A DNA stretch of 64,000 nucleotides from Rhodosorus marinus CCMP1338 (GCA_029953675.1 JAMWBK010000007.1:806001-870000); one strand, 5' to 3'. Positions 41,467-59,479 are shown, counted from the first letter of the stretch. The notes: a model not told the origin generated them from the sequence alone. Made by a program: numbers and translations.

Positions 41467-43642
41467 TCAGCCCTTAACGCAGAGAATCTGACGCAGGGTG
41501 TACTTGATCTCGACGAGATCATCTTGCGCGGCCATAACCTTATCGATTGGTTTGTAGGCCATTGGAGTTTCGTCTATAACATCTATGTCCTTTCTGCACT
41601 CTACTTGGCTCGTCGCTCGCATATGATCTTCGACAGAAAATCGCCGCTTCGCTTCCGATCGGGACATCAACCGTCCTAGGACAAATTGCCGTTGAACACA
41701 TGTCACTCGTCAGCAACAGACAACTCTTTTCCTCCAAAAGTACCTAAATCACTTACCTGCTCCGTGACTGCAGCTATTGTACGACTCCGCGTTCCCCTTT
41801 CCTTGCACAATGAAAGACTTTGCACCCATCGATCCGGGGATAATTCCATACCGACCTGCAGATCAGCGAAACAGGAGACAAAAAAAAACAACGTCGCTTT
41901 TCGTGTTCAATTTCCCCTCCAATCAAAGCAGAACAATGAAGCCGTCGGCCAGCCACTTCTCCCCTCACCTTTCTCGGCACAGACCGCGCCCTTCCGCGTG
42001 ATCAACAGATCCTCGCCAAAATGAAACTCTCGGTTAACATAGTTGTGATGACAATCCACTGCCAAAAGATCAGCCTGAAATCCCCTTAGTGACTCTGGAA
42101 CGCTCTCTCGAAGGGCCTTCAGAAAACTATTCATCATCACCTCTCTATTCACCTTTGCAAACTTTTGCGCCCATCTGGCAGTGTCAGCAAAAAATAAACA
42201 TAAAAAGTTCGAATATTAGTCAAATTCAAAATATAGAGGACAGGCTGTCATCAAATATCGACAGCCCGTCATGTCATTTCAAAGCCAGCTCGTGCCGTTG
42301 GGCAAGGAAGACGCTTTTCCTGTCTGAGCATGCGCTGAACGACTGATATTTCTATTCTCTCCATTGTTTCGATCTTTTCCAGCCCTTTCGACGTCGTTTT
42401 CAGTCCCGGTTTTTCTTGACTTGTGGTCCAAAATCTGGGGGCAAACGCGTCGACTGATGGTCCGTGGGGACAGTGGAGGGTTCAGGGCAAAGCCTCCAAA
42501 TCGTCTTTGTAAGCTTCCGGAGATAAAATCTGAGCTGAGATAATATGAACCCTCTGTATGCTAGTCCAGGGTCTGAAAGCATCTGCTTCCTGAGTGGTCT
42601 TTCCCTGCTCACTGCTGCTGGCCCTGGCTGTCTGGACTCCCTACCCCATGGAAACCGTGCCTGCACGTTGATGGCGTTGAAAAGAAGGAATTCTGGAGAG
42701 AACCACAGCCTGCAGCCTCGTATGCATCCCCGGATGGCGGTGATCGAATGTAGAGGTTTTTTTGGTTGGACGGGTTTGGTGGCTTACCCGACCGCGCGTA
42801 GGTAGTCGTCAAAGTGGTCAGAACCTGCCTTGAAGTAGGCGAGATCCTTGTTCGGAAGATCGTGAACGTGCTTTCTCATGTCCTTCTTCGCAAGCTCTAT
42901 GAAGTACATTCCAATACGGTTGCCAACGCCTCGCGAGCCTGAGTGGAGCATTAGCCAGATCGAATCGGTCTCATCGAGACACATTTCGACGAAGTGGTTT
43001 CCGGTGCCCAGGGTGCCAAGGTGGTTGACGAGATTCCCCTTGGCAATTCGAGGGTGCTTAGCAGCGATTCTCGTAAAACCCGAGAACAGCTCATTCCTAA
43101 ACCTGAGGCCAACTTCTGCTGGCTCATCTGGAAAAGTCCACATATAACCAAGGCTTAGCGAGTCTTCATTTCAGGTTATGCTTGTGACTAGCTTCCGTAC
43201 CTCCCCGCCAGGCCCCCTTGTCCCCGCGCCCTCCACCGCTGCTACGTCCGTGGGGAATGGCTCTCTCCACAGCGTATCGAATCGTCTTCAGAGAGTCCGG
43301 CATGTCCACAGCCTTGAGGCTAGTTCGCACAGCCATCATTCCGCATCCAAGGTCAACTCCAACCGCCGCAGGAATGATCGCCGCCTTAGTAGGAATCACA
43401 GAGCCCACCGTGGCGCCAATACCCCAGTGACAATCCGGCATCACCGCAATCCCCTTCTCGTGTATAATCGGCAACGCCGCCGTCTGTTTCAACTGACTCC
43501 TCGCGACGCCTTCGACGGGCAAACCTTCAGTCCACATCTTCAACGGAACTTTCCCCGTTCCAGCGTTAACCACACTATGCACATGACGAAGGCCCAAACC
43601 CCCGAATACTTTTCTCCTAATCATCGTTCCCTGCCAAAGCAC
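41467..43642 (-). CDS. rtcB: RNA-splicing/repair ligase RtcB, bacterial (E. coli-like) type, 4 introns, presequence-like N-terminus
   Basis: MPDCHWGIGATVGSVIPT, VGVDLGCG, LGTLGTGNHFVE, MLHSGSRG, DCHHNYV, TRKGA, IIPGSMG, SCSHGAG|R (His codon at 41764-41766), DETPMAYK, ILCVKG*. Confidence 0.95.
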
Positions 43643-45406
43643 TCCCGCACAAGTACCACTCCGGACGCGGCGGAGTACAAGAATAGGAGTGGGCTTGAAT
43701 TGAGCAAAAAACCAACCCCTTCCCTGTACCGCTCGGTACTGCCCTTGACAAACCCGAAAACGCTTCAGCGCCTAGCTAGATAACCAGTACCTAGTTCACA
43801 CCCTCTCCCTCGCTCTACTTTGTCCCGATCAACCAGATACCCGACATGATAGCTAGCTCCCCAACCACCAGAACCACGGTGAAGAAGACGGACTGCGTAT
43901 GGGCAGTTGCTTCAACAATACAACCCCAACACCTGTACGGGCCAAATGTAGCTCACCACCCGTTCACTTGTAAGGGTAAGAAGAACCACCCGCCGACACC
44001 TCTTAGCTCCAAGTACACGGCTGATGAAGAAGACCAAATTCCTTTTCTGTAGCTGCTTCAACATTTTTGCAACCCAGAACTCTTCTCACCCCGATCACCA
44101 ATAAAGAAGAAAGGACATCCGGCGTGATTGATTAGCTCCTAAGCAGTGGCGAAGAAGGTCAACCTGCTGCGTATCTGCACCATTTGCTTGCGCCCGTGAA
44201 GAAGATATTGCTATGTGAAACCCGTGTGAGCCGGATGGAGGTCATTCAGTCCATAGCACGGAGGAAGAACACCCGATGTGACTTGTTCACGCCTTGGGAA
44301 AAGGTGATGATGAACTGCGTATCTTCAGCACTTCCTTCTGCGCAGATGTACTTCGCTGATGCATTATTTCGACTTGGACGAGCAGCAAGTAGATCAACAG
44401 AGTCGCTTTGCAGGTAGCTGCATGAATCCCAAATCTTCTTAAGCTTCATAAAGGTCTGTTGCTCCGACGATTGTCGCCATGACTCCGTGGAAAAGACTAC
44501 ATGACTGTCGTTTGTTTTGGTCTGTCAAGGTTGTAGCCGAGTTGAGCAAGGACATGTCGTCACCGAAGGCACATAGAGGTAGAGCGGATGTGAAAACAAG
44601 GGGAAAGGACAAAAGACGCGACCGGACGACAAGCTCCCACTGTTCAAGGGTAGATCATCCTCCACAGCAACAAACTACACTGAGGGTGTGAGAATTCTTT
44701 TCGGTCTCGACGAGATTGGAGAAAACAACTGTGTGAATGAACATGAGGGAGACGACGAGTTTCAGCCGGGTAACCAGTCGCCTACCAACTGGCACCCTTA
44801 CCATCCTTGAAAACCATACATCCAAACGAGTTGCAAAGATGGATATGAGATCCCAAAGTTTCGCGAACGCCATGAGAAGTAGTCTGTTCGTGCCTGGCCG
44901 ATAGCCGCGTTCGGCAGCACGCCCGGTTTGGGATGCTTTCGAGTTGTAATAGACAAAACATCGGACAAGGTAAAAGCATACAACCAACCGCTACATGCAA
45001 TAAACTACCGAAAGAAACGTCCAGACGATGACTGGATTGGAGGCCAGCCGAGAAGATACTGCTCAAGGAACAGACTACATCTCTTTCGCTTCGCCGTGAG
45101 TAATGGTTTTGGTTTGTCCATCCAATGCTTCCTCAAAGGTCTTCCTGTTCACTTCGTTTTCCGGTGCCCTTCCAGTTCCTGGGCATACTCGGATTTTAGC
45201 CTCTACATCACGTGCAGTACTTGAATGCGAGCGAATCTGTACCTCGACTCTCATGTAGAGAAGACGCCGGATTCACAGGCGTGCTGTCGATGGACTAGGT
45301 CTCCTCGACTCCTTAAACATTCACTATCTGGACATTCGTTTTTACCTTAACAGTCCACACGTCTCTGTACAAGAAGGGTTAGTGCTGGCATTCTGTTTTG
45401 ACGGAT

Positions 45407-47206
45407 TCATTCGCCTTTGATGTTAAGAATAGGCGTGAGAGTATGTACAATACTACAGAGCTTTCCCTGTGCTCTCATGACTGCGGCTATGTTCTTGTAC
45501 GACGATGGCGCAGTCTCCATCCACCGACTGCTCTTCCTGTATTCAACAGGTCTATCAGCTTTCTCTAGTGCTCTCGAAAAATCTGCGTAGGATGCCTGAC
45601 GAGATTTGCTTCTCGTACGTCCTAAGATGAACAACACAGAGCGGGAAAGGATTGAGTGAGCATCGGTGTCGAGCTCCATTTCGCATCCAGAATGAGACGC
45701 GCTCAAGATCACATCTCTTGGAGACTTGGAAGTCTGTTTCCAGGGCCGCTCGAGGACGACGTGGTGTCATGACATTATCGGCTGCAAAAGATCTAGGGCA
45801 ATCAGCTAACTGGTTCGGTATCTGTAGCTTACCTACACCACTGCTACAGCTTTCGAACGACTTGTCGTGGCCAGTGCCTTTCACAACGTAAGATTTGTCA
45901 GTCATAGTCCCTGCGACGATTCCCAGCTCGTCTGAGGTGATCGAACATGTACAAGAACGGAGACAGAGCCATCGATAAAGGATCAATTGTATCCAGTTCT
46001 GATCCAAAGTTGGGAACAAGTACCATACCCAGTTTGGCACTTATTGCACCTCTTCTCATAACGTAGAGCTCACTCCCCATGTGCGTCTCCTTCGACACAA
46101 AGTTGTGGGGACAATCGAGGACCTCAAGTTGCCCCTTGAAATTTCTGAAACTTGACGAAACGTGCTGTCGGAGACAATTCACGACGTTTCTCAGGATCAG
46201 TTCTCTGTTGAACTTTGCGTACTTGTTTGCCCAGCTGGAACACGGACACCAAGCCATGTTAGAAAACTCATACGGGCACATGGGGTCAGCTTGCATTTCC
46301 AACTTACCGGTCGGCGGCCAGGTAGTATTTGAAGCTTTTCGAGCTTTCTTCGATATACGCCAAGTTGACGTTTGGAAGACTGAAGGCATTGACGCCCATC
46401 TCCTTCCTCGCGACCGAAGTAAAATATTCTCCTAGCTTTCGACCGGGTTTCCTCGATCCGGTGTGCACCATAATCCAGATGTTCTCGAGTTCGTCCGAGC
46501 TCATCTCAACGAAGTGATCAGGGAGTCCGAGTGTACCCAGTTGTTGCTCTGGTTGCTCTATGACGGCCTCCGGGTCCCGCTTCCCGATCCTAGTGTACTC
46601 TGAGGCCAGGTGTTTATTGTACAAGCTCTGGACACTATCTGGAACTTTACGTGCGCAAACGAAAAACCCACAACGTTAGTATTGATTCGAACGTTGGAAT
46701 ACTTGCAACGTTGGGATCGATGACCTACCGGATGACCACGATCCATAGTCCTCCGATAAGTGCTTTAGGGAAGAGTGACCATGCGGAACAGATTCCTGTA
46801 TCGCCAATCGGAGTTCCTTTAAGCTCTCTGGAAGGTCAGCGTACTTTAAGCTCGTCTTCCTAGCCGTGATCCCGCATCCTATGTCCAACCCAACGACCGC
46901 AGGAATGACTGCTCCGCTCAAAGGCACCACGACACCAGTCGCGGACATGAAACCAAAGTTGCAGTTCGGCATCGCCGCCATGCCGTGCTGGCTTATTTTC
47001 GGATGCGTAGCCATCAGTTGCAGTTGGTGTTTGGGATCCAAGAAACGGTCCTCAACGGGAAGCTCCCTCGTAAACTTATATAGCCTCGTCTTCACCGCCT
47101 CCCGCGGCTCCACTCGGGGCCATAAGATCCTGTCCGAAAACGATCTCATCGAAGATCGAATCCATCCAGATCTTCTAGCCTGCAGGAGCTTAGCACCTGC
47201 ATCCAT
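45407..47206 (-). CDS. Divergent RtcB paralog with catalytic His replaced by Ser (predicted pseudo-ligase), 4 introns
   Basis: MPNCNFG, VGLDIGCG, LGTLGLPDHFVE, MVHTGSR, DCPHNFV, MRRGA, VAGTMT, SCSSGV|GR (Ser codon AGT at 45840-45842), ETAPSSYK, ILNIKGE*. Exons are open and intron positions and phases match the first copy. Confidence 0.9.
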
Positions 47207-48307
47207 CAGTACCTTTTTCTTACTCTACCACTCTCAATAAATACGAGATCCTGGCATCCGATCATCCCAGAGAAGTCACCTCCCATCCTCATTTCCCTTG
47301 TAGTCTCCAAGGCCGTCGAATCAAATATCCTCATCGAACCCTAAACAAAGAAAATAATTGATATTAATCCAATTATTGACTATTACGTGTCCTTTTGTTG
47401 AAACTTATCCAATGCTAACATAAAATTTTGTGTCAGCTAAATTCTTATCGAATAGTAAGTAACTAAATGCTCTCGGTTTTTTTATACCACAATATTAAAT
47501 AGTTTAAAAATAATGGATATAAATAAATAGAATTTTTGTTTCAAATATTTTAGACCAATTATTTTGCGGTATACAACGGGACGAGGCACGATTAGACCAA
47601 TTAAAAGGAGTTTTATATAGAAAAGTCTCATAATATTTTTATTTTAAACTATTCATCAAGAATAATGTACCAATAAATACTGAGTTAGTGTAAGCATGGT
47701 TCGGAAAGATGGATGGCGTCCTTTTTCTTATTTTTTGAGAGGAGTACCTGAGGGTAAGAAGCAGTTACAGAACGAAAGACCATAACTAAGTCCATACTAT
47801 ACGAAATTTGAACCTCCTCCCCGGATTTGCTCTGAAAATCCTCCGCTTGGACAGCGTGGTCGGTGATAGCTTTTCACCAAAGGCAAAAGGTACGTCGTTG
47901 CGTATGAACTCACCCTTTTATAGCTCTTTTGGCAGCTTCACGCACCGATACCCGGGTTCTTCTTCCAAACTCCAAACAGAATCCGTCTCGGACTAAAAGC
48001 AACCCACCAGGCCATCGTCTACCATGGTACCGCCTGAACTCCGAGCGGGAATGCATAAAGAACAAGCGGAAACTCCCAAAGGCTCTGTGGAAGCCGCGAT
48101 GACATCTTCGCCACCATGTTGAAGCCCTCATGCTATGCTCCAAGATATTCCCTCAGCCAAGGCGCATGTGTCAGAACATTTCCTTGTCGTGGTCGACGTG
48201 GACAGGTGCGTCGGGCAGTTCTATATTTGTGATAGTTTGGGTGTTGAAGAGTGTGGAAAATCCACTAGGCTAGTGAACCTTCTGGGCCATCTTAGCCCCT
48301 CTGAGAG

Positions 48308-49186
48308 ATGATTTTCTCAGTTCGAGGTGCGACGAAGAACATCTTCGGATCTCGAGTCAGTCTTCGAGCTTTCCGGGAAAGCAGTGGAATCCGCCTGAGG
48401 CAGGTTGCTACGGAAGCGGAAAGCGCTCATGATCGATGGTCGAGGAGGCCGAACAAGAAGGTCTTACTGAGCAATCTACCTTTCAACTTGGATTCCGCAG
48501 AACTGGAGCTGTTGCTGAGATCTGTGGCAGAGTTGAGATCTGTGGAGATTCTAAAAGACTGGGCCGGGAACAGTGCGGGTAAGTAGCTCAGTACCGACTT
48601 TCCGAGGTTGGTAAAAGCTCAACTGATGAGGAACACATACCTAGGTAGCGCTGTGGCAGAATTTGCTACGATGCATGACTGTCATATTGCCATGCAGACT
48701 TTAAGTGGGTACCGGCTTCACAGAAAGCCTATTGCTATTGAGCTAGATGAGAACGCCAAAGAGAAAAGTGAGCACCAGGCGATCCTTCTTCAGTCGAATG
48801 CTGTTTGTACTCAATAATTCTTTCCGCTTGCTTCTTGTTCTCCGTCCATGAATCCAGATAAGATGATCAATGAGTGCGCTGTGAAGATCTTCAACGTGCA
48901 CTTCGCTTATAAATGGCAGGATGTCAAGGATCTGGTTCGTCAGATGGGCGCCGAGGCGACCAGCGGGCAGATCGTTCGCGCGGATGGAGAGCGGCGAACC
49001 CGCAGCTACGCGGTCCTCATCTACAAAACACCGGAGGATGCCAGGAGCGCTGTGGAAATCATCGACAAACAGGTGGACAGAAATCGTCGAGTGCGGTGTG
49101 TTCTCGCGATGGACGAGGACCCGCCTTTGGAAGATGGGGAGGAAGACTTTTACGAACGAGCCTCTCTCCTGCCGGATAATTTTTGA
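48308..49186 (+). CDS. Two-RRM RNA-binding protein with presequence-like N-terminus (Gbp2/hnRNP-M-like RRMs)
   Basis: KKVLLSNLPFNLDSAELELLLRSVAELRSVEILKDWAGNSAG|SAVAEF and VKIFNVHFAYKWQDVKDLVRQMG..RSYAVLIYKTPEDARSAVE; 2 introns. Confidence 0.8.
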
Positions 49187-50546
49187 AACCCGGCCAATGC
49201 AGCCTATTTATCCCGACTTCAGCAACAAAACAACGTAAAAAGATTCTGATACGACACTGTACCGGATCCTTTCGCGCAGCTAAGGATCTGGACTTGCTCA
49301 GTGTTGTGCAGCGCTGCAGTGACTTTTGAGGTGAATATCGAATGAAAAACTTCTCGAAATGAGATGCCATGATGAAGCTCACTCTCCAGGATTCCACTTC
49401 AAACTGAACCATGGGGCGCGGGCTTCATTCTCAGACCAACTTGTTTGTCACCCACAAAACACGTAAAGCTGATGTGAGCAGCCTCGCGAAGGTGCACACA
49501 AATTTTCTTATCAGCTCGAGCATGGAGATGCTTGACTGTTCTCTGGCTAGATCACTACATACCCTCGAGCGCGGCGGTCCAGAAGTGTTTGATCGCAGTT
49601 AAACTCAACGCGATTACGAGCTCGGACAGTTGATGAAATGTAGCGTTCAATGGACGCGAAGCTAGCAACATCTCATGCACGAGCAAAGAAGATCTCTTTC
49701 CTGTCTGCAAGTGCTAAGATCCGGGCAATGCCATCCACTAATCGAGGGGCCTTCAAAGACCGCGCCTCCAGAACGATCGCCTCGTCACAGCGCAAAGCGG
49801 TTGAGCTCGACTGATCCAAAAAGGCGAAAACGTTCGTCAGGGAGGTCTTGTGAAAGCGCTCCGCGCAGAACCCGAGGTAGGCCTTAACGACCTCGCAGAC
49901 TTTCAGCAAGCTACTGGTGAACAAAGGCGGAGAACCAGGGCAGATCTGCAGAGCCTCGGCGTTGGCGAGCGCCTCCCGGTGCGTAATTGGCAAACGCTTT
50001 GCACAAGCTAAGGAAGAACCACTAGAAAGGAAGCCAGGCCAAGTATGCATCACCTGGTTCACCCCAATTCTGCGGGGGGGACCGAGAACGAGTACCGCTG
50101 GGGCTAACAACGTAGGAGTTGTAGTGAAACCTCTGGGATTGGGTCGCGGCAGTCGGGCTTTAGAGACGTCTACGGCATCGTCTAGCTCGTGTACATTAAG
50201 GATAGCCCCATGTCGTCAGCAACAGTCGAAATTCCAAAAACCGAGGGTTTTTTTGCACTTCCCGTTCCAGGGATCTATTGGTACGCTAAAACCTTTCGAC
50301 ATTGTGGTTTTCGTTCGTCTTGCCAGAGCCGGTGCCTATCGTCTATAACTCCTCATCAACCCAGTCTCCACAGGGTTGTTGTTGTCGAAATCCGGTCATC
50401 TTACCCAAAGCTCCACGAGTTGGAGAGTCCGTACAGCTTTCTGGGGAGGGGTGTTAACCGTTTACGACGACTTCTATTAATCCGTACGGGGTACTAGATA
50501 CTCTATTGCTTCCTTGCTACACAAAGCCGAAGAGGAAAAATAAAAA

Positions 50547-50573
50547 GAAAAAATTTCAAAAGATATGTCAAAA
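50547..50573 (-). terminator. Tandem Pol III oligo-T terminators of the 5S gene
   Basis: The minus strand after the 5S end reads TTTTGACATATCTTTTGAAATTTTTTC. Confidence 0.75.
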
Positions 50574-50692
50574 GATACGTCACCTGGCGTTCCCGAGTCA
50601 CCCCTGACCTCAGTACTCTCCAGGCCCGTTCGAGCTTAACTTCCGAATTTAAGATAGGATCGGGTGCATGTTCGAGAAGTATGAACGTATCT
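50573..50692 (-). rRNA. 5S rRNA (single dispersed copy)
   Basis: 120 nt, AGATACGTTCATAC..GCACCCGATCC..CGGAAGTTAAGC..GGGCCTGGAGAGTACT..GGGAACGCCAGGTGACGTATCT. Helix I (AGATACGT/ACGTATCT) pairs perfectly and is followed by TTTT. Confidence 0.95.
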
Positions 50693-51475
50693 GGCAACTT
50701 CGAGGTCTGTTAATGAATATATACTCTTTTATAACTTGCGGCGTTTCGTTCTGTTGGGGGAGGGGACCAGGGGTGTACTTAGAAACGTTTCGAATAGTTA
50801 TTCTTTCACCCTCGTATTAGCATTCTACTGCTTTAAAAAGCTGTCATGGACCCGGTTTGATAAGAGAATGCAGCTCACAACCCCATCCTCAAACTGGCTT
50901 TTTACCAGCTGAATGGAGACCATTTGAGGATGTACAGAGCATAGTGTTTAGAAACGTTCGCGTAGATAATTTTGAATCCCTGGCATGGCTTTCTAGTGTT
51001 TTTGTATGGATCCGCCTTCGGTTCCCGACGCAGTTCAAGTCATCAGTAGAGAATTGGATGTGTTCGTTGACACCGGGATGAAGATGAGATCCGAAGGAGT
51101 TCATCTCTCAAGCAGTGACATCTTCCAGGAAACTACGCCATGTGGACGTCAGTATTGGATTCTTTCCAGTCCGTCGATTGAGAGATTACGTGGCCATAGA
51201 ATTCTGGTTCGATACCAACCGTTCCCGAGCCAACGCGCATGGCCGAACAAGCTTAGGATATAGTACCACCCTTCTCCGCGCCAAGTAGGTTCCAGCACCA
51301 GGCATAGAACCGTGACTGACTGATCGGAGAAGAGCTACGCACCCTCTTCAAAGCTCCCAAGCTCATAAAAGAAGAGTTCCGGACACCGACGGCATGATGG
51401 GAGTGTGGTCTTTGAGCTACTCCAAAGCCCCCCGTTACGGAGGAAGAGAATGGTTCCTTAGGAGAACGATCTAGG

Positions 51476-52515
51476 ATGTTTCGATGCAATAAGATCATAC
51501 AGAAGCGTGGTCTAAACCTTGGATATCTCTCAAACCGTCGATGGATAACGGACGACATCGAGTACGATTTAAACCTTCGAGAGGCGGACAAGGTATACAC
51601 TGATCGAACGCACAGCCCCCACTCGAACTGTTCTTCTTACGTTCTTTGTTGCTCATTCGGTGATTAGGAGCGCTCGAAGGTTGTTGATCTATGTAGGAGG
51701 TAAATGGGCAAGAGAATTGAGTTCTGATCTCGTGAATTGGGATTGCTCTATTCACCTCTTGGCTGGTTCAATCCCTGGAGAGGCAGTTTCCCTCCGCTTT
51801 CCCTGACCTGTTTGTCTTTTCTTCTCATCGTTGGGTAACCTCAGGCGAGTACTGCTCTACAACACGCCAAAGTCGTCAACGAGAGATGAGATCCAGGTAT
51901 TGATGGAACCGTTCGGAGAGATCGAACGGATTCTGGGACCCAGGCCGGAGATAAATCTCGACATGAAGCGATCTGTAATGCCTGTTGAAAGCCCTTGCCC
52001 CGGCGACTTCGTTACAATCCAGTTCGCGGACGAGTTGTCAGTTCGCTCTGCCGTCGAAAAGCTCACTGGTGTGCGTGTTGGTAATCAACGTCTCAAGCTT
52101 GTTCGTGATGATATCGGATTCGATATGACGTTGCCTATCGAGTGTGAGTTGGTCAAGCAAGGCACTTGACCTGGAAAGGACTTGTGGCTAATGGTCAAGC
52201 CTATCCGTGTTGTTTCTTCCCTCAGATCACCACACAGTATACAAAGCATACCTCAAGCTCATCATCTACGACGCCCCGCTCAAGTTCAAGCTCTCTGATG
52301 CTCAGCGATTCTTTGCGAACATCAACGTTGAGATTCAAGACGGCGTCGACCAGCACGTGATCGCACCCTCCGAAAAGCTCAAGAGAATGGTGCTTAGAGC
52401 AAAGGACAGAAGCCAGTTGCAGGCCGCGGTGAACTATGTCATGAAAGGGTTCAGGCAAAACCGCTGGGGATTTACGGCGCGTCCTTACCCTGAAGAGACA
52501 AGACCAGAAGACTAG
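51476..52515 (+). CDS. RRM-domain RNA-binding protein with presequence-like N-terminus (one clear and one degenerate RRM)
   Basis: Model MFRCNKIIQKRGLNLGYLSNRRWIT..ADK|ERSKVVDLCR|RVLLYNTPKSSTRDEIQVLMEPFGEIERI..FVTIQFADELSVRSAVEKLTGVRVGNQRLKLV..|..LIIYDAPLKFKLSDAQRFF; 3 introns. Confidence 0.7.
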
Positions 52516-52895
52516 CAAGAGGAAGCCATAGCTTTTGACAAGCCACACCTTCATCGGGGAGAAGAGACCAAAAACACTAACTCCTGCGACCCCAGAAGTG
52601 AGATCGGCCACGGGAGGGGCGATTCAAGACCTTCTCAGCACGTCCCTACCTTGAAGGACCAAGACGAGAGGACTAAGTCTTTAGGATGCCATACTGTGGA
52701 GAAGACCACCGAAGCTGCTTCAGTGGGAATAAGGGGAAGAATTGGGCGATTTTCGGCTAAATGTGAAGCTCGATCAGCGTACGAGCGGAGTGGATTGGGA
52801 CTGAACCTGGTAAAAGATAGACTGATCGTGACGACGCGCGGCAGCGTAGGTCTTCAGACATTGTTTCGGTCTTTTGTAAATAGAAGAATAGAATT

Positions 52896-53846
52896 TCACC
52901 TGGACAGGTCCTGACGAAGCTTGTAGAGCGCCGAGATATATTCAGGTCCGAGGCCACAGCATCCTCCGAGGATGAGGCCGAAAGGTATCTGGTGTGCCCA
53001 GGCTCTTGCAAACGACGTTACGAAGACGCTGGGGTTGAGGTCGGTTCTGAACGGCTGGGGTTCCGGGTTTTCCGCCAAGGTCCAGTTGGGGTCGACCGGG
53101 GTGAGGGCGTTCGGGTTGGCTCCGAGTTTAACAGAACGCTTCAACATCCGCTCCCGCGCAGGGTTGTCGGCGGTGAGTAGCTCGTTGAAGGCCCGGCTGA
53201 CTGATTCGGGTTCACAGCAGTTGAAGATGATGCCCTCTAGACACTGACTGGTCTCGGTGAGCTCCAAAAGCGCTAGTACTGCTTCGGTGACAGTCTCTCC
53301 GCTGCGGAGACGTCCATCTTCACGCAACGTCCATGAGGCAAAGACTGGTTTCCCGAGGTTCTGAACGGCCCTCACCGCCATGGACATCTCACGGACTGAG
53401 GAGAGAGTCTCCGCCATGAACACGTCTGCGTCCGGGGCTGTAGCCAGCCCGAGCTGCCTGTAAATATCCGCGCCGTGAACCTCATCCTTCATCACCAGAT
53501 CCGGTCTGTAGCTCTCCACCAACGGAGGCAGCGAGCAAGCCACTCGCACGTGCTCCCGCCCAGCTCCATCCCGGGCCTCCTTCGCCAGCTCAACCGCCTT
53601 TGCGCTCAGCTCCATCATATCCGCCACCGCAAACCCGACCCCAGGCGTCACCCCGAAGTTATTCGCCGTCACCACATCACATCCAGCCTCAATATAGGAC
53701 CGGTGAACATCAACCACAGTCCCATGATACTCAGGCTTCACTATAGCAACCGCAGACCAGATCTTACGATCCTCCTCCACACCACGCTTGAACAGCTCCT
53801 CTCCAGTACCACCATCAAAAAGAGTTATCCTAGACCCAACAGCCAT
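52896..53846 (-). CDS. Homocysteine S-methyltransferase family protein (intronless)
   Basis: LFDGGTGEEL, VHRSYIEAGCDVVTANNF, FMAETLSS, GIIFNCCEPE, and LGGCCGLGPEYI with the Zn-binding cysteines. Confidence 0.9.
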   Translation of the reverse strand: MAVGSRITLFDGGTGEELFKRGVEEDRKIWSAVAIVKPEYHGTVVDVHRSYIEAGCDVVTANNFGVTPGVGFAVADMMELSAKAVELAKEARDGAGREHVRVACSLPPLVESYRPDLVMKDEVHGADIYRQLGLATAPDADVFMAETLSSVREMSMAVRAVQNLGKPVFASWTLREDGRLRSGETVTEAVLALLELTETSQCLEGIIFNCCEPESVSRAFNELLTADNPARERMLKRSVKLGANPNALTPVDPNWTLAENPEPQPFRTDLNPSVFVTSFARAWAHQIPFGLILGGCCGLGPEYISALYKLRQDLSR

Positions 53847-54254
53847 GCCCTTGCACACCCTCCTAAGCATACCCCCAAACCCCTCGAATTCTTCCCGATA
53901 CAACAAAATTCATCACGTACGTCAGTCCCTCGTTGGAAAACTAAAACCTGACGAACAGGAAACCGCTGCGAAGCGCCGCAAAGCAGCCAAATCCCCCTCC
54001 GTAAACTAAATATAATCCGTTTCCAATCCTTCGTACATCCTAGAGAAACATATCTTTCCAATCCAAGTTTTCCAAGAAGACATAGAACAGAAAACACAGG
54101 ATATGGGGTCAAGTTTTTCATGAATGGAAGGGGTATCTTGACTTGTCTAATCCTGGTCCTCGGGCCGCGAGATATCTTCCGACCTCTTTACGACCGTCGT
54201 GGTGCAGCCGCTGCGCTTTCAATGCGACCACTGAAGAGAGTCTCAGCAAGCTTG

Positions 54255-56370
54255 AGGCCGGGTTTGTACCATTGATCATAGAGTGCTTTGGGTTTTTCGA
54301 CAGTGTTGCTTTCCCGTTGGCACTACGGCCCCCCCACCCCGGAGCATTCTCGACATCCGCCCACCTCACCGGAGTTGTCTCTGACTCTCTGGCATTAGAA
54401 CGCTACTCTGTTGTCGCTTTGTTGTCAAGGGGTTCGCGCTCCCGCCAGCTGGAGCTGTACTACATAAGAAAAGGCTAAAAAGTGTGAAAAGTATTCAGGT
54501 TCGAGATGCTTGCAGCCTTAGGACTACCCCCGAGTTTTCTCCTCGGAAGAAGTCTGCTTAGGCCCGCCGGTGCTGGTGAGATAAGGGAAGAACTGGGATC
54601 CGAATGGTGCGTGAGGGATCGGGGCCGGTCACCGTGGTCTCGCTCAGCAGTCCAAACGCGTCCTTTGGCTTGGTTGATTCAGTAGGTTCTCGTTGCCTTC
54701 GTGCTCTCTAGCGACTCATGAGCGTCTTGATAGCCTCCTCACGGAGCTGTGTTGGACTCTCTAGAGCTCAAACGCTGCTTTACTGTTGGACGCGCGTCAT
54801 CAGCGGCTTGCTGCTCGCTTCTCAGGGTAGTTGGGCTCCGAATAATCCGGACGATGAAAGGCTAGCTAGTTTTCCCAGTTTCACAATACCCCACCTGCAT
54901 TGACGTCACCTTTTTAAAAATTCCATGTCGTCTGCTGAAGTTCACCGCTCGATAATCAACGGTGCTGACGCACGGTTTGTCAGGCTACCACCGCCAGCCT
55001 GTAGTCGATGCAGAGTCTCCGACCCCCGCGACGCATGGACCGTGAGGGAGGAGACGAGGTGCACGCAGCTGCAGGCGAACAGGATTTCGGCCGCGCGCTC
55101 AAGGAGTATCCGAAGGTGTTTCCGGATACGACCCCACTACTCCCAACAGGGAGGGATAAATACGCTCTGAAGATTCGGTTGACCCCAGGCGCGACGGCCT
55201 GGGCACAAGCAGCGTGCGTGTCATGCAATAAGATGTTTCGGGATACGATCCCACTACTCCCAGCAGAGAGGAATCAGTACTCTCTGTAGATTCGGTTGAC
55301 CCCACACGCGACGGCTCCGGCACAAGCAGCGTGCGTGACATGCGATAAGGTAGATCATAGATGCTTTCACGATATACGTCTCTGAGCCAGCTTATGATGA
55401 CTGCCAGCAGAGTACATATTCCGGGGTTGATCTCTGTCATTGCTTTCGAGTATTGGTGGCTTCAGGCTGCTATGTTGATCATAGTTCCCCGAAACACCTT
55501 CCGATACTCCTTATTGAGCGCGCGGCGGCAAACCTGTTGGCCGAACACTGCCTGCGCCTCGCTCCTCCCTCGTCCCGGCACAAAAGCACCTTGTCCCATG
55601 TCAAGTACTCAGAACGCTTACATGAGGAAGTTCGGGATCTCAGGGAGAAGGGCCCACGAAGTATTGAGTCGGAGTCCGTATCCGGCACCTGACTTGTAGA
55701 ACAGGCTACAAGTCGGCAAGAAGGATGGGGGTCGGAGACTCTGCATCGACTACAGGCTGGCATTGGTAACCTAACAATGTTTCAGGGTAAAGGGGGACAG
55801 ATTGTCTTCAAATTTGCATCGGTCGAAATGATCGGTCCCCTTGTTCGCCATTTTCTTAGTAAACCAGAACAACTAAAAACATCTAGATCTACGGAGGTGG
55901 CATTTTTTATCTGCCCTGAACACGTTTGCGGAATATTATGGTTAATTTGTATCTAAAAGTAGTATTCTAGGGTCAATCGGCCTTGGATATAGCACAAAAA
56001 GGGTCATAAGCACCGCATTGGTCGTGATGCACAGCCAATGCGATGGCTGAATGAGTCTCAGTACGCTTGAGGGGATGACTCATCCCACCTTTCGGTACTC
56101 AGCGCTGTTTCCATCCGGTTTGTACTCGCTGATCATCGAGTGCTTTTGGTCTTTTAGACAGTGTTGCCTTTCTCGCGGGGGTCGTCGTGTTTTTCGTTAA
56201 AATGTCGACCGAGGGATGCCACCTCCTCACAGAGCTGTCTCTGACTCTATTCGAACGCATCCTCGCTGTTGCATCACGATGTTGCGTTGTCGTTGGAGTC
56301 GCGATATCAACTTCGTCGTTTCCGCTCCTCAGGGTAGTTAGGCCCTGAATTCATTGGTTGATGAATGGAA
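54255..56370. mobile_element. Decayed Ty3/gypsy-like relic flanked by diverged direct repeats
   Basis: ~54255-54410 and ~54780-54860 recur at ~56115-56370. Internal gypsy pre-RT linker LKEYPKVFPDTTPLLPTGRDKYALKIRLTPGA and RT-start-like LSHVKYSERLHEEVRDLREKG. Confidence 0.6.
54993..55761. repeat. Fold-back inverted repeat with perfect 35-bp termini
   Basis: gccagcctgtagtcgatgcagagtctccgaccccc (54993-55027) is exactly inverted at 55727-55761. ~55045-55125 is inverted at ~55485-55570, and there is an internal ~105-bp tandem duplication at ~55130-55345. Confidence 0.9.
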
Positions 56371-56603
56371 TGAGGAAGCAGTCTGCCGCTTCCCGCGCCA
56401 ACTGTGTATCTAGGCGTTTGTGGATCAAGAGGTAGGTTTGCTTTTTTAGAAGAGTACCTTCACTACGTCTTCAACTTTTGAACTGCGACGAACGGTGGAT
56501 AAGACGAAGCGGGAGTGACGTAACTGTGGATGGAGCAAGGTTGGATATTCGGGAGAGGAGTTTCACTGTGTTCTTTGGTTTTGAGGGGAGGATTGAAATA
56601 AGA

Positions 56604-57962
56604 ATGGGGATGAGGATGGCGGCTGAGGTCTTGAAAGCGCGAGCTGCTTTGAAGACGTTAAGCCTGTCGAGAGGGAACAAGACGCTTCGGAGGAGCTCCT
56701 GGGAGCGTGTGATGCGTGAATGTCAGTTGGTAAGAGGATACTGTATTTTTTTTACCGTTCGGGTGCTTTGGTTTTGGTGTTCTGAATCTGGTCTTGATCG
56801 GTTTAGGCAGACAATTTTAGAATCAAAGACTTTAGGAGGTAAGCCTCTATGTTTTTATTTTCTGGTTCCTGGGCGCGCGGGTCGACGCGGCCGCCGTCGT
56901 CGGTGTGGAGGGGCTTGCATCTGAGCAATGAGCCTCGTCCCCACTCAGGTCAGTCCTTGTGAAGAACATACCCGATGCGTTGCTTCGTGAAGAGATTATA
57001 GAACACCGGTTCAGCGCTGTTGGGAGTGTTCGCAAGGTTTTCATACGTGCTCCACCAAGCCACAGCCCCAAAGCCGTCAGAGCCAATTCTCTCATTCCCC
57101 GGGATGCCACTACGAGTACGAAATTCTGAGCGAAGAAGAAGATCTATCCCCGTCACGTTCTGAATTTTCTCAGCTGTTCCTATTCCGCTCGTTCCGAAAA
57201 GGTTCAGCTGTCGTCTCCTTTGAATCGGGGTTCTCCGTCGCGACGTCGTTAGAGGAGCTCAACGGTGCGCCCGTGGATGTTAGATACCCTTCGTCTGGGA
57301 TGCAAATAGAAATCAACAAAGGTTGGGAGTACAGCTGGATGCCGCGTGTTTGTAAGATCCCGCACAAAGGTTCTCGCTCAGAGCGAGCTAAGATAACTGG
57401 CCCGGTTGTTACCATCGTCATCGTCTGTTTGGTATAGACGCAAGCCTACTCCTCTGCTTGTAAATCTCTGAACAATTTGGATTTCATTTTACCTTCTTGC
57501 CAGGCCAAAGGCCAAGGGGTGGATTGTTCCGGCGAATCCTCATCAGAAATCTTCCTCTTGCGATGACTTCCTTCGATTTTCGCACGCTACTTAACCACCT
57601 GGGTAGGTCAAACTACGGGATGATGCAGTGGGCTGTGGAGGATTTTGAAAACCATATTTCTGCCGTCGCGGAGTTTTCGACCACGTTCGATGCATTGTGT
57701 GCACTCGAGCAGCTTAACTCCATCTCGATCGAGGGTAACCCCATCTTCGCTGAGCTGTACCCTCTCAACTTCAACTTCAGCTACTCATCGATGGCAGTAA
57801 GTATCGCAACGGCATGGAGAAGAGGTTTTCCACATGTAGGCACAAGGACGCTGATGGTCTGCCCCTGTTTAGGATCGGAGAAAGGCGTACATTCAGGAAT
57901 TCTCAAATCCCTCTGAGCTGTTCACATTTGTGCTAAAGTCTACAGCTTCAGAAACGGACTGA
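56604..57962 (+). CDS. Two-RRM RNA-binding protein with presequence-like N-terminus (multi-exon)
   Basis: MGMRMAAEVLKARAALKTLSLSRGNKTLRRSS; RSVLVKNIPDALLREEIIEHRFSAVGSVRKVFI..SAVVSFESGFSVATSLEELNG; RRILIRNLPLAMTSFDFRTLLNHLG..SAVAEFSTTFDALCALEQLNSISIEGNPIFAEL. Confidence 0.75.
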
Positions 57963-58726
57963 GACTTCACGGCGCCTGTGACACAGCCGGCAACGAGAAC
58001 TGCCCTTGCGGCTTGGAACGCGTGTGGTTGACTTTGAGCTCACACACGTAAGATCTAGCGTTCGCAACAGCGTACAGTGCTCGCTCGAAGAAGAACGAAC
58101 ATAGGGAAGAGAGGGGGAGAGATGAGAGAGAGATGGAGTACTCGGAATTCTTCTTTTTGTTCTCCGCTACGACTGGCGACTCTGGCATTTGGAAGAGCAC
58201 TGACAATAGCACAAGTAGAAAACTAGGACAGCTCCAACCCAGAGACCAGAGACCCTTAGACAAATAGGAGGCGAGAACTAACGGGCCAGGGAGTATCGGA
58301 TGAAGGTAAACATGGAAGTTCCAGACATCCAAGCAATAGAGCTTCGAAGGCCGCTCTCAGGAAGCCGGTTCTGAATTTCTGGGCTGATAGGTGTTAGAAA
58401 CGTTAATAATAAGCCTTTTGACTCAAATCCAGACCTCAAACAAGACACTGCCGATCGGGGCGTAAAGTAGAGATGAAAATCCACGTGACGCATCATCGCT
58501 GGCTTGCTGAGAGAACATACTTGCCAGGTCCTACAGGGGACAGCCTCTTCAATCGAAGATTTAGCAGATATCCATCCATTCAGACGTTGCCTAGGAGTTC
58601 ACGACATTGCCTGCTTGCCACTAGGCAATCACAGTCGAACGCCACCGTAACAACAAATATGTCAAAATAGCGCTTCGCCCTCCTTGCTTAACAACAACCC
58701 TAACGGACGGGAATAAAAAATGTATA

Positions 58727-58798
58727 TTCCCCCGCCGGGAATCGAACCCGGGCCAACGGTGTGAGAGACCGCTATCCTAACCACTAGACTACGAAGGA
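58727..58798 (-). tRNA. tRNA-Glu (CTC)
   Basis: 72 nt, TCCTTCGTAGTCTAGTGGTTAGGATAGCGGTCTCTCACACCGTTGGCCCGGGTTCGATTCCCGGCGGGGGAA. Anticodon loop CT-CTC-AC, canonical D and T loops, downstream T6. Confidence 0.97.
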
Positions 58799-59479
58799 AT
58801 TAGGAACGACGGGAATATTATCAATCTATATATTATAATTTCCTAACAAGATTTTTCGAGTTTCTGATTGCGTCGAAACTATTCAAACAATCATCGTGTA
58901 GATCCGCAGCCTTCCTACGATTTCATTCGTCAAATTGTCTTGAATAACGAAATTATTTGTGTGACCCTCCAATAAGTAGTTTGCGAGGCCGCTGTCGTAA
59001 GGATGGGGATGCGGGATGCAGGATGATGGAAGACCATAAAGTTGACGGTAAGTAACCTGTATAAAAGTAAATGTATGGGGTAGAATATAGAAGGGTATAT
59101 TTTGTAAGCAAATCCCTCCATAGTTGGAATTTATTTTTAAATTTTGTGGAACATGGATCGTGCAAACAAAGTATTATATTAAGAGTAAGAATTGGAATAG
59201 TTTGTTTTGAAAGAAATGCGAGCGATTCCGGCGGTTAGGTTTTGATGGGTTTTCTGATTGTGTTATGGGATTTCCGTCTGGAGAGCACGGAACACGTACG
59301 TAAGCCCGCCTCCCCCCCGCCGACCCGTTTTGCCTGTTGCGTATGAGAAGACTAACAGACGCTCCAAGACCCACCAAACACCCCACCAAACAGGTGCTCC
59401 TCGCGGATCACCTCCATCACCTACACAAAAGTTTCCGGACATGAACAGACGGAGGGGGACATTTACCCTCCTCTACGCA

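Follow-up and report, generated by a model that had tools for sequence, protein, structure and literature searches.

Do two genes for RtcB-type RNA ligases and a set of RRM protein genes beside them share a function, or do they merely share an address? The question is raised by a nuclear locus of Rhodosorus marinus, a unicellular red alga in the class Stylonematophyceae (PMC10250338). A first-pass annotation had read the five genes as a single module for organellar RNA ligation or repair, with the RRM proteins as specificity factors. We examined 64 kb of nuclear DNA around them (contig JAMWBK010000007.1, assembly GCA_029953675.1; this whole stretch is referred to as the window) and arrive at another reading, which we consider probable: two independent tandem families, an RtcB pair and an RRM trio, adjoin here, and the second RtcB is a non-catalytic partner. 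The pair consists of the following genes.

41467 to 43624, minus strand: RtcB-1, predicted intact RNA ligase gene (splice model, PF01139, transcript open reading frame (ORF) P0011).
45407 to 47206, minus strand: RtcB-2, pseudo-ligase paralogue (splice model, PF01139, NCBI model P0001, transcript P0002).

Six-frame reading and splice sites yield RtcB-1 as five GT-AG exons (43624-43201, 43127-42788, 42174-41969, 41855-41757 and 41675-41467) encoding 425 amino acids. The model is equal in length to transcript ORF P0011 of another Rhodosorus strain and 97% identical to it, and each exon matches PF01139 (exon scores include 92, 96 and 49 bits, at a cut-off of 27). Over the full length the protein is 63-66% identical to bacterial RtcBs, and in the alignment all catalytic residues are present: the metal ligands, the nucleophile His354, Asn185, and the contacts to GTP and 5'-OH. 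Judged by sequence, RtcB-1 is an intact gene for a 3'-phosphate/5'-OH RNA ligase of the E. coli type. It resembles bacterial RtcBs (E. coli RtcB, Myxococcus RtcB1) in metal ligands, nucleophile and GTP/5'-OH contacts, but it differs from them in being nuclear, in its four spliceosomal introns, in a basic N-terminal extension, in the dead paralogue that adjoins it and in having no rtcA or rtcR partner in the window.

RtcB-2 likewise has five exons (47206-46729, 46644-46308, 46234-46029, 45931-45833 and 45621-45407), here encoding 444 amino acids, and four pieces of it match PF01139 at 60, 62, 51 and 40 bits (same cut-off). The transcript P0002 of a second strain backs both the ATG at 47206 and the exon-2 acceptor at 46644. 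At the 5' end of RtcB-2 (47206-47334) the deposited NCBI model (NDN08_004451, P0001) uses an upstream exon instead and skips the MDAGAKLL...SFSD leader; its N-terminus is probably mis-annotated, since the ORF of P0002 begins at the ATG at 47206.

What RtcB-2 has lost can be read from the known roles of RtcB residues (PMC9745838, PMC8051266). In P. horikoshii numbering, the binuclear metal site is made up of Asp95, Cys98, His203, His234 and His329 (PMC9745838). The guanylyl group is accepted by a histidine, forming RtcB-His-GMP (P. horikoshii His404, E. coli His337; PMC9745838, PMC8051266), an asparagine contacts the GTP alpha-beta oxygen and the 5'-OH (Asn202 and Asn167, respectively; PMC8051266), and the arginine of the HSGSR motif holds the phosphates of the 5'-OH strand (PMC9745838, PMC8051266). 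The alignment comprised 277 other RtcBs: the 120 best matches of RtcB-1, eight non-Rhodosorus sequences from a word-indexed search with RtcB-2, and 149 from HMMER. The word-indexed search gave ten matches; its place was taken by an exhaustive HMMER scan with RtcB-2 over 1.84 billion representatives, from which the other 149 of the 150 best matches were used.

The guanylyl-accepting position is His in 269 of these 277 sequences and Ser in RtcB-2 as well as in P0002. The equivalent of Asn202, an Asn in 274/277, is Asp in RtcB-2. Both the Asp and the His of PDxH have become Asn (PNxN), IPGSMG reads VAGTMT, and the surrounding motifs have changed from SCSHGAG to SCSSGVG, from PDCHWG to PNCNFG and from GNHF to PDHF; the second strain carries the same residues. 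Retained are the five metal ligands (D, C, H, H, H) and the HSGSR arginine. Without the guanylyl-accepting His, the Asn and the PDxH residues, RtcB-2 is therefore incapable of canonical three-step ligation. It would form no His-GMP but may still bind metal and RNA ends. The alignment thus bears out the earlier claim of one active RtcB and one pseudo-ligase: catalytic residues are intact in RtcB-1, and His is replaced by Ser in RtcB-2.

The pseudo-ligase is nevertheless conserved. It is expressed (as P0002 in the second strain) and shares 87% identity with that transcript. As a yardstick of divergence we used the second-strain transcript contig L006 over the adjoining gene RRM-A, which gives a synonymous divergence (dS) of 0.227 and a non-synonymous divergence (dN) of 0.064. 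When the RtcB-2 coding sequence is evolved neutrally in silico to dS 0.227, 61% amino acid identity is left (maximum 70%) and the frame stays open in 0/2000 runs. Because the observed identity is 87% against 61% expected under neutrality, the frame is open and the degenerate residues are identical, we regard RtcB-2 as a conserved pseudo-ligase and not as a decaying one. Beyond Rhodosorus its closest relatives among the best 150 matches of the HMMER scan are at most 40% identical.

The origin of the pair is recorded in its introns. All four are common to both genes in aligned position and phase (the slash marks the intron): AWRG/D in RtcB-1 and SWSS/V in RtcB-2 for intron 1 (phase 1), AVG/W and ADR/W for intron 2 (phase 2), EKG/R and KLD/E for intron 3 (phase 1), and GAG/R and GVG/R for intron 4 (phase 1). 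Given that all four positions and phases are shared, RtcB-1 and RtcB-2 are tandem duplicates that arose after intron gain. Among ten RtcBs compared, the best blastp match of RtcB-2 is RtcB-1. In maximum likelihood (ML) trees RtcB-1, its second-strain copy, the Porphyridium purpureum RtcB P0012 (single exon, 65% identity) and the transcript P0013 form a clade with a value of 99 in the Shimodaira-Hasegawa-like approximate likelihood ratio test (SH-aLRT). Around this red-algal clade stand RtcBs of Myxococcota, Planctomycetota, Acidobacteria and sphingomonads (63-66% identity); the tree holds no E. coli, Myxococcus or Diplonema sequences, and the nearest named relatives in it are Myxococcota, Planctomycetota and Acidobacteria. 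We considered and rejected a source in cyanobacteria (plastid) or alphaproteobacteria (mitochondrial), as neither the match list nor the trees show a specific affinity to these groups.

RtcBs without the catalytic histidine are rare, and two others deserve comparison. P0284 comes from another MMETSP eukaryote, not Rhodosorus (JGI sample 3300016877; GC content at third codon positions 0.70). Its best blastp match is Rhodosorus RtcB-1, it is 32% identical to RtcB-2, and an unspliced transcript of the same organism (L005) keeps an intron (1260-1420) at G/R in phase 1, which is the position of Rhodosorus intron 4. Since P0284 combines this intron position with RtcB-1 as best match, dead paralogues may be older or recurrent in this eukaryotic clade. 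The second, P0283, is a bacterial metagenome RtcB (L003 8001-9855) with PN, VAG and ASG motifs and no His nucleophile; it lies directly upstream of genes for a MazE antitoxin and a PIN-domain protein and may represent an RtcB without catalytic activity that is tied to a toxin-antitoxin pair. These sequences share the loss pattern of RtcB-2 (PD to PN, IPGS to VAG, SHG to SSG or ASG), but they are only 32-39% identical to it, and the eukaryotic one additionally lacks one of the metal-ligand histidines; shared origin and convergence both stand as explanations. As a separate observation, P0002 runs into intron 4 of RtcB-2 (45622-45832), giving a truncated ORF, and P0241 and P0285, from the P0284 organism, likewise run into the intron after ..G[VA]G and are truncated, P0284 being the spliced form. 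This read-through in transcripts of His-less RtcBs could reflect regulated or inefficient splicing.

Where, then, would the two proteins act? RtcB-1 has a basic leader of ~15 amino acids, MIRRKVFGGLGLRHV. Ahead of the conserved VPxKxW motif, bacterial homologues carry 11-14 residues with acidic N-termini, against 25 residues in RtcB-1 (net charge +5, first acidic residue at position 33) and 40 in RtcB-2 (net +5); the acid-poor extensions count 40-59 residues in Porphyridium and >60 in P0013. Common to the extensions is an R-x-x-H-[ST]-V motif ahead of the first conserved strand, which could be a processing site. Basic, acid-poor extensions of this kind plausibly fit import into an organelle. 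The leader strings quoted by the first-pass annotation are all found in the five gene models, and its basic leaders on both RtcBs are indeed extensions that bacterial RtcBs do not have. Its view that the leaders are unlike the plastid type holds in part: all are basic and acid-poor, but RRM-A begins with MIF in the window strain (MSL in the other strain), RRM-B begins with MF, and the Porphyridium RtcB may start with MGAFGV, which resembles the plastid leader type. For comparison, the plastid protein PsbP, encoded in the same window, begins with ..MGFVAG.

These observations can be arranged into a scenario. A bacterial-type RtcB gene would have entered a red-algal ancestor, gained introns and an N-terminal extension, and then undergone tandem duplication. 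RtcB-1 would carry out the GTP/Mn-dependent sealing of 2',3'-cyclic-phosphate or 3'-phosphate ends to 5'-OH ends, probably after import into an organelle, of which the mitochondrion is favoured. RtcB-2, presumably without His-GMP but with its two-metal site and the arginine for the 5'-OH strand retained under purifying selection, would most likely have no catalytic role and serve as a partner, either by binding or presenting RNA ends or by regulating or shielding RtcB-1. A known arrangement with some likeness is the metazoan tRNA ligase complex (RTCB with DDX1, FAM98, CGI-99 and Ashwin, together with archease and PYROXD1), where a catalytic RtcB is likewise combined with non-catalytic partners that bind RNA, direct localisation or protect the active-site Cys. 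The red-algal RtcB, however, belongs to another clade, none of those partners is present here, and the candidate partner itself has the RtcB fold.

The RRM genes most likely stand beside the pair as mere neighbours, save for a possible sharing of a promoter between RtcB-2 and RRM-A. This part of the argument requires the remaining features of the locus.

47207 to 48307, no strand: AT-rich spacer between the divergent genes RtcB-2 and RRM-A (GC 0.40).
48308 to 49186, plus strand: RRM-A, two-RRM protein (RRM_1 55 bits, two domains; identical to NCBI model P0131).
50572 to 50692, minus strand: 5S rRNA gene between RRM-A and RRM-B (Rfam RF00001, 72.9 bits).
51476 to 52515, plus strand: RRM-B, probable degenerate two-RRM protein (RRM_1 18 bits, below the cut-off).
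52896 to 53906, minus strand: homocysteine S-methyltransferase gene between RRM-B and RRM-C (PF02574 150 bits; NCBI gene call).
56604 to 57916, plus strand: RRM-C, two-RRM protein (RRM_1 34 bits, two domains).

The layout drawn in the first-pass annotation agrees with our gene models: two RtcB genes on the minus strand, RRM genes on the plus strand from 48308, 51476 and 56604, and an AT-rich island between RtcB-2 and RRM-A (GC 0.40 against 0.49 for the window). Its count of three RRM proteins needs to be qualified, as RRM-A and RRM-C exceed the gathering cut-off of RRM_1 (Pfam PF00076, 20.7 bits) but RRM-B, at 18 bits, does not.

RRM-A has three exons (48308-48578, 48645-48767 and 48858-49186) and encodes 240 amino acids; its second intron is confirmed by L006, and its dN/dS between strains is 0.28. 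RRM-C (provisional exons 56604-56725, 56949-57036, 57174-57351 and 57504-57916) encodes 266 amino acids, against 281 in the NCBI model, and RRM-B (provisional exons 51476-51561, 51845-52143 and 52226-52515) encodes 224, against 245. In RRM-B only half of domain 1 matches RRM_1 and domain 2 has no match. Its alignment with RRM-A in hhalign is collinear and weak (E 0.018), and AlphaFold2 models of its domains from single sequences reach a pLDDT of 46 and 67, with nothing below E 1.9 in Foldseek against the PDB. In all three genes the inter-domain linker is interrupted by a phase-1 intron, RRM-B and RRM-C have in common a phase-2 intron immediately ahead of RNP2 in domain 1, and the first RRM of RRM-A resembles the second of RRM-C (hhalign E 5e-6; also seen with tblastn). 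A word-indexed search found no relatives of RRM-A outside Rhodosorus. We read the RRM genes as an old, fast-evolving and lineage-specific tandem family, as their introns and domains suggest. In architecture RRM-A is like organellar two-RRM proteins (the chloroplast cpRNPs and the plastid protein cS22/PSRP2), with a leader and two RRMs in ~240 amino acids, and it aligns weakly over its full length with the plastid ribosomal protein cS22 in PDB 5mmj (E 2e-4); against such kinship, its best PDB matches are generic ELAV/HuR RRMs (E 3e-8). Two side observations concern this gene. The two strains labelled R. marinus differ at ~23% of synonymous sites and by 24% in the 5' leader of RRM-A, which is large for one species name. 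Contig L006 aligns to window positions 47630-50415 and thus extends ~1.2 kb beyond the RRM-A stop, which suggests a long 3' untranslated region or read-through.

The genes around this stretch are of mixed kinds. Genes for PsbP and a CCCH zinc-finger protein lie directly upstream of it, and an intron-less tRNA-Glu(CTC) gene (58726-58799, minus strand) lies directly downstream of RRM-C. Two small hypothetical ORFs are also found between the RRM genes. The 5S rRNA gene is a dispersed copy, given that it stands solitary between RRM-A and RRM-B. Positions 54900-55800 are gene-poor and contain a tandem repeat (55113-55349; two copies of a 117-bp unit, 85% match) as well as repeated ORF fragments on both strands, where NCBI calls an 84-amino-acid hypothetical gene. 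The rest of the window holds unrelated genes; Pfam searches on 20 large ORFs and tblastn reveal no archease, RtcA, or additional RRM or RtcB there.

Synteny was compared with a 21-kb locus around the RtcB orthologue of Porphyridium purpureum. This locus contains neither another RtcB nor a gene with an RRM match, where one of four unannotated genes was read by eye (no RRM motifs) and none of the four was Pfam-scanned. The orthologue sits among unrelated genes, so that the linkage is not kept. Three Porphyridium neighbours (L001 3302-4096, 4213-4728 and 7818-8630) relate to organelle translation: their products are a ribosome recycling factor, a FAM210 protein and a ribosome hibernation factor of the S30AE/PSRP1 type.

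Within R. marinus itself contiguity fails too: the 5S rRNA gene, the homocysteine S-methyltransferase gene and the two hypothetical ORFs separate the RRM genes, and only RtcB-2 and RRM-A stand head-to-head. As the RRM genes form one family and the RtcBs another, the evidence for a cluster comes down to a single adjacency. The nuclear genome is compact (31.2 Mb with 8,392 genes and 24,821 introns, or ~1 gene per 3.7 kb; PMC10250338), and by a rough inference an RtcB-RRM adjacency is not unusual in it, considering how many RNA-related families would look equally suggestive. Overall, this falls short of clustering beyond chance.

The mitochondrion of R. marinus gives the favoured location its interest. 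Stylonematophyceae including R. marinus have minicircular mitochondrial genomes (Lee et al. 2023, PMC10250338). The R. marinus nad5 gene is split over two minicircles, and two transcripts suggest trans-splicing, though without PCR confirmation (PMC10250338). A role as mitochondrial ligase is testable because both the minicircular DNA and the split nad5 with possible trans-splicing are published. In diplonemids, mitochondrial genes are fragmented on small circles and the transcripts of the modules have 3'-phosphate and 5'-OH ends; the candidate for their joining is an RtcB of bacterial descent from the E. coli clade, predicted to be mitochondrial, together with RNA-binding matchmakers (PMC12699882). 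This diplonemid RTCB1, found also in kinetoplastids and Naegleria, is comparable to RtcB-1 as a bacterial-derived RtcB in a eukaryote with a small-circle mitochondrial genome and a fragmented gene, and it is proposed to join pieces of transcript with 3'-phosphate and 5'-OH ends with the help of RNA-binding factors. There are differences as well: the red-algal clade acquired its RtcB independently, nad5 is the one split gene known in R. marinus, with trans-splicing unconfirmed, and all function-critical catalytic residues persist in each of the three RTCBs of Diplonema, where no dead paralogue is reported (PMC12699882).

Given this parallel, it might be argued that all five genes do form a mitochondrial module for RNA ligation or repair, in which RtcB-1 seals, RtcB-2 assists and the RRM proteins select substrates such as the nad5 half-transcripts. 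The basic, acid-poor N-termini of all five proteins are consistent with it, as are the divergent RtcB-2 and RRM-A with a spacer of at most 1.1 kb into which the RRM-A leader reaches far, the split nad5 with its candidate trans-spliced transcripts (PMC10250338), the diplonemid model (PMC12699882) and the purifying selection on RRM-A. Yet neither an RRM neighbour nor a second RtcB accompanies the Porphyridium orthologue, 5S rRNA and methyltransferase genes lie inside the stretch, and a single tandem family of RRM genes amounts to one adjacency event with a kind of neighbour that, on a rough estimate, is not rare. In addition, the first residues of RRM-A and RRM-B, M-I-F and M-F, resemble the plastid-type leader of PsbP, and RRM-B is not a confident RRM. 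We consider such a five-gene module unlikely, and the placement of three RRM genes in an RtcB module, as first proposed, is not upheld.

Improbable, too, is that RtcB-1 serves as a cytosolic or nuclear ligase for tRNA splicing or for a reaction of the unfolded protein response type, with RtcB-2 as accessory subunit. In its favour, archaeal and animal RtcBs have this function, RtcB-1 carries a short N-terminal extension, and presequence prediction is unreliable in R. marinus. RtcB-1 is, however, of the bacterial, E. coli-like type and not of the archaeal/metazoan tRNA-ligase type: its matches to archaeal and human RTCB in the PDB reach only E 1e-24 to 1e-30, against 65% identity to bacterial proteins. 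Its orthologues moreover have acid-poor extensions of 40-60 amino acids, and in Euglenozoa the bacterial-type RtcBs are the ones assigned to mitochondria (PMC12699882). Very improbable, finally, is that RtcB-2 is a decaying duplicate without function: its missing nucleophile and invariant residues, its very long branch in trees and the second-strain transcript that enters intron 4 and predicts a truncated protein would fit decay, but its ORF is intact across five exons with canonical splice sites, its inter-strain identity is far above the neutral expectation with no simulated copy left open, its degenerate residues are the same in both strains, and a His-less RtcB in another eukaryote shares one of its intron positions.

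Several points weigh against our preferred reading of two adjoining families with RtcB-2 as a non-catalytic partner. The partner role is one that we infer purely from what RtcB-2 has kept and lost. The extension of RtcB-1 reaches only ~15 amino acids beyond the bacterial start, and mitochondrial proteins of R. marinus seldom show a detectable presequence (Lee et al., PMC10250338). The diplonemid parallel is weakened because Porphyridium, which has a conventional, intron-rich mitochondrial genome (PMC10250338), also has an RtcB-1 orthologue. Porphyridium belongs to a different class, so that linkage of RtcB and RRM genes could persist within Stylonematophyceae. The head-to-head arrangement allows co-regulation: the spacer measures 1.1 kb, L006 covers ~680 nt of it, and, as L006 covers the window from 47630 onward, the long RRM-A leader comes within ~420 bp of the RtcB-2 ATG. 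The spacer may thus be a bidirectional promoter region. Lastly, free ML trees (129 and 38 rows) place RtcB-2 outside the red-algal clade on a branch of ~6-8 substitutions/site. There it is drawn to other His-less sequences, a placement that we rejected as a long-branch artefact. Constraining RtcB-2 and P0284 into the red-algal clade gives a higher likelihood and is not rejected in the approximately unbiased (AU) test (p 0.56 and 0.73). As the free trees leave RtcB-2 on so long a branch, its origin is argued from the shared introns and the AU test.

RtcB ligases as such are well understood, and mitochondrial copies of bacterial type have been proposed in Euglenozoa. Searches of the available literature turned up neither an account of red-algal RtcBs nor one of RtcB pseudoenzymes; E. 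coli-type RtcBs that form a red-algal clade and have targeting-like extensions, and a dead paralogue kept by selection, both appear to be undescribed there. How the split nad5 comes to be expressed in the R. marinus mitochondrion was left open by those who published the genome, and the RtcB locus offers a concrete candidate pair of enzymes. That RtcB-1 and RtcB-2 in fact join the nad5 half-transcripts (and perhaps other RNAs) in the mitochondrion, with RtcB-2 and/or the RRM proteins as matchmakers, is a long shot at present. If true, a protein-ligase system for trans-splicing would have arisen independently of the one proposed in diplonemids, and minicircular mitochondria would possibly provide a second, independent example of transcripts being joined by a protein. 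The pseudo-ligase, for its part, is a natural probe for those functions of RtcB that outlast the loss of guanylylation, such as the binding of metal or of RNA ends.

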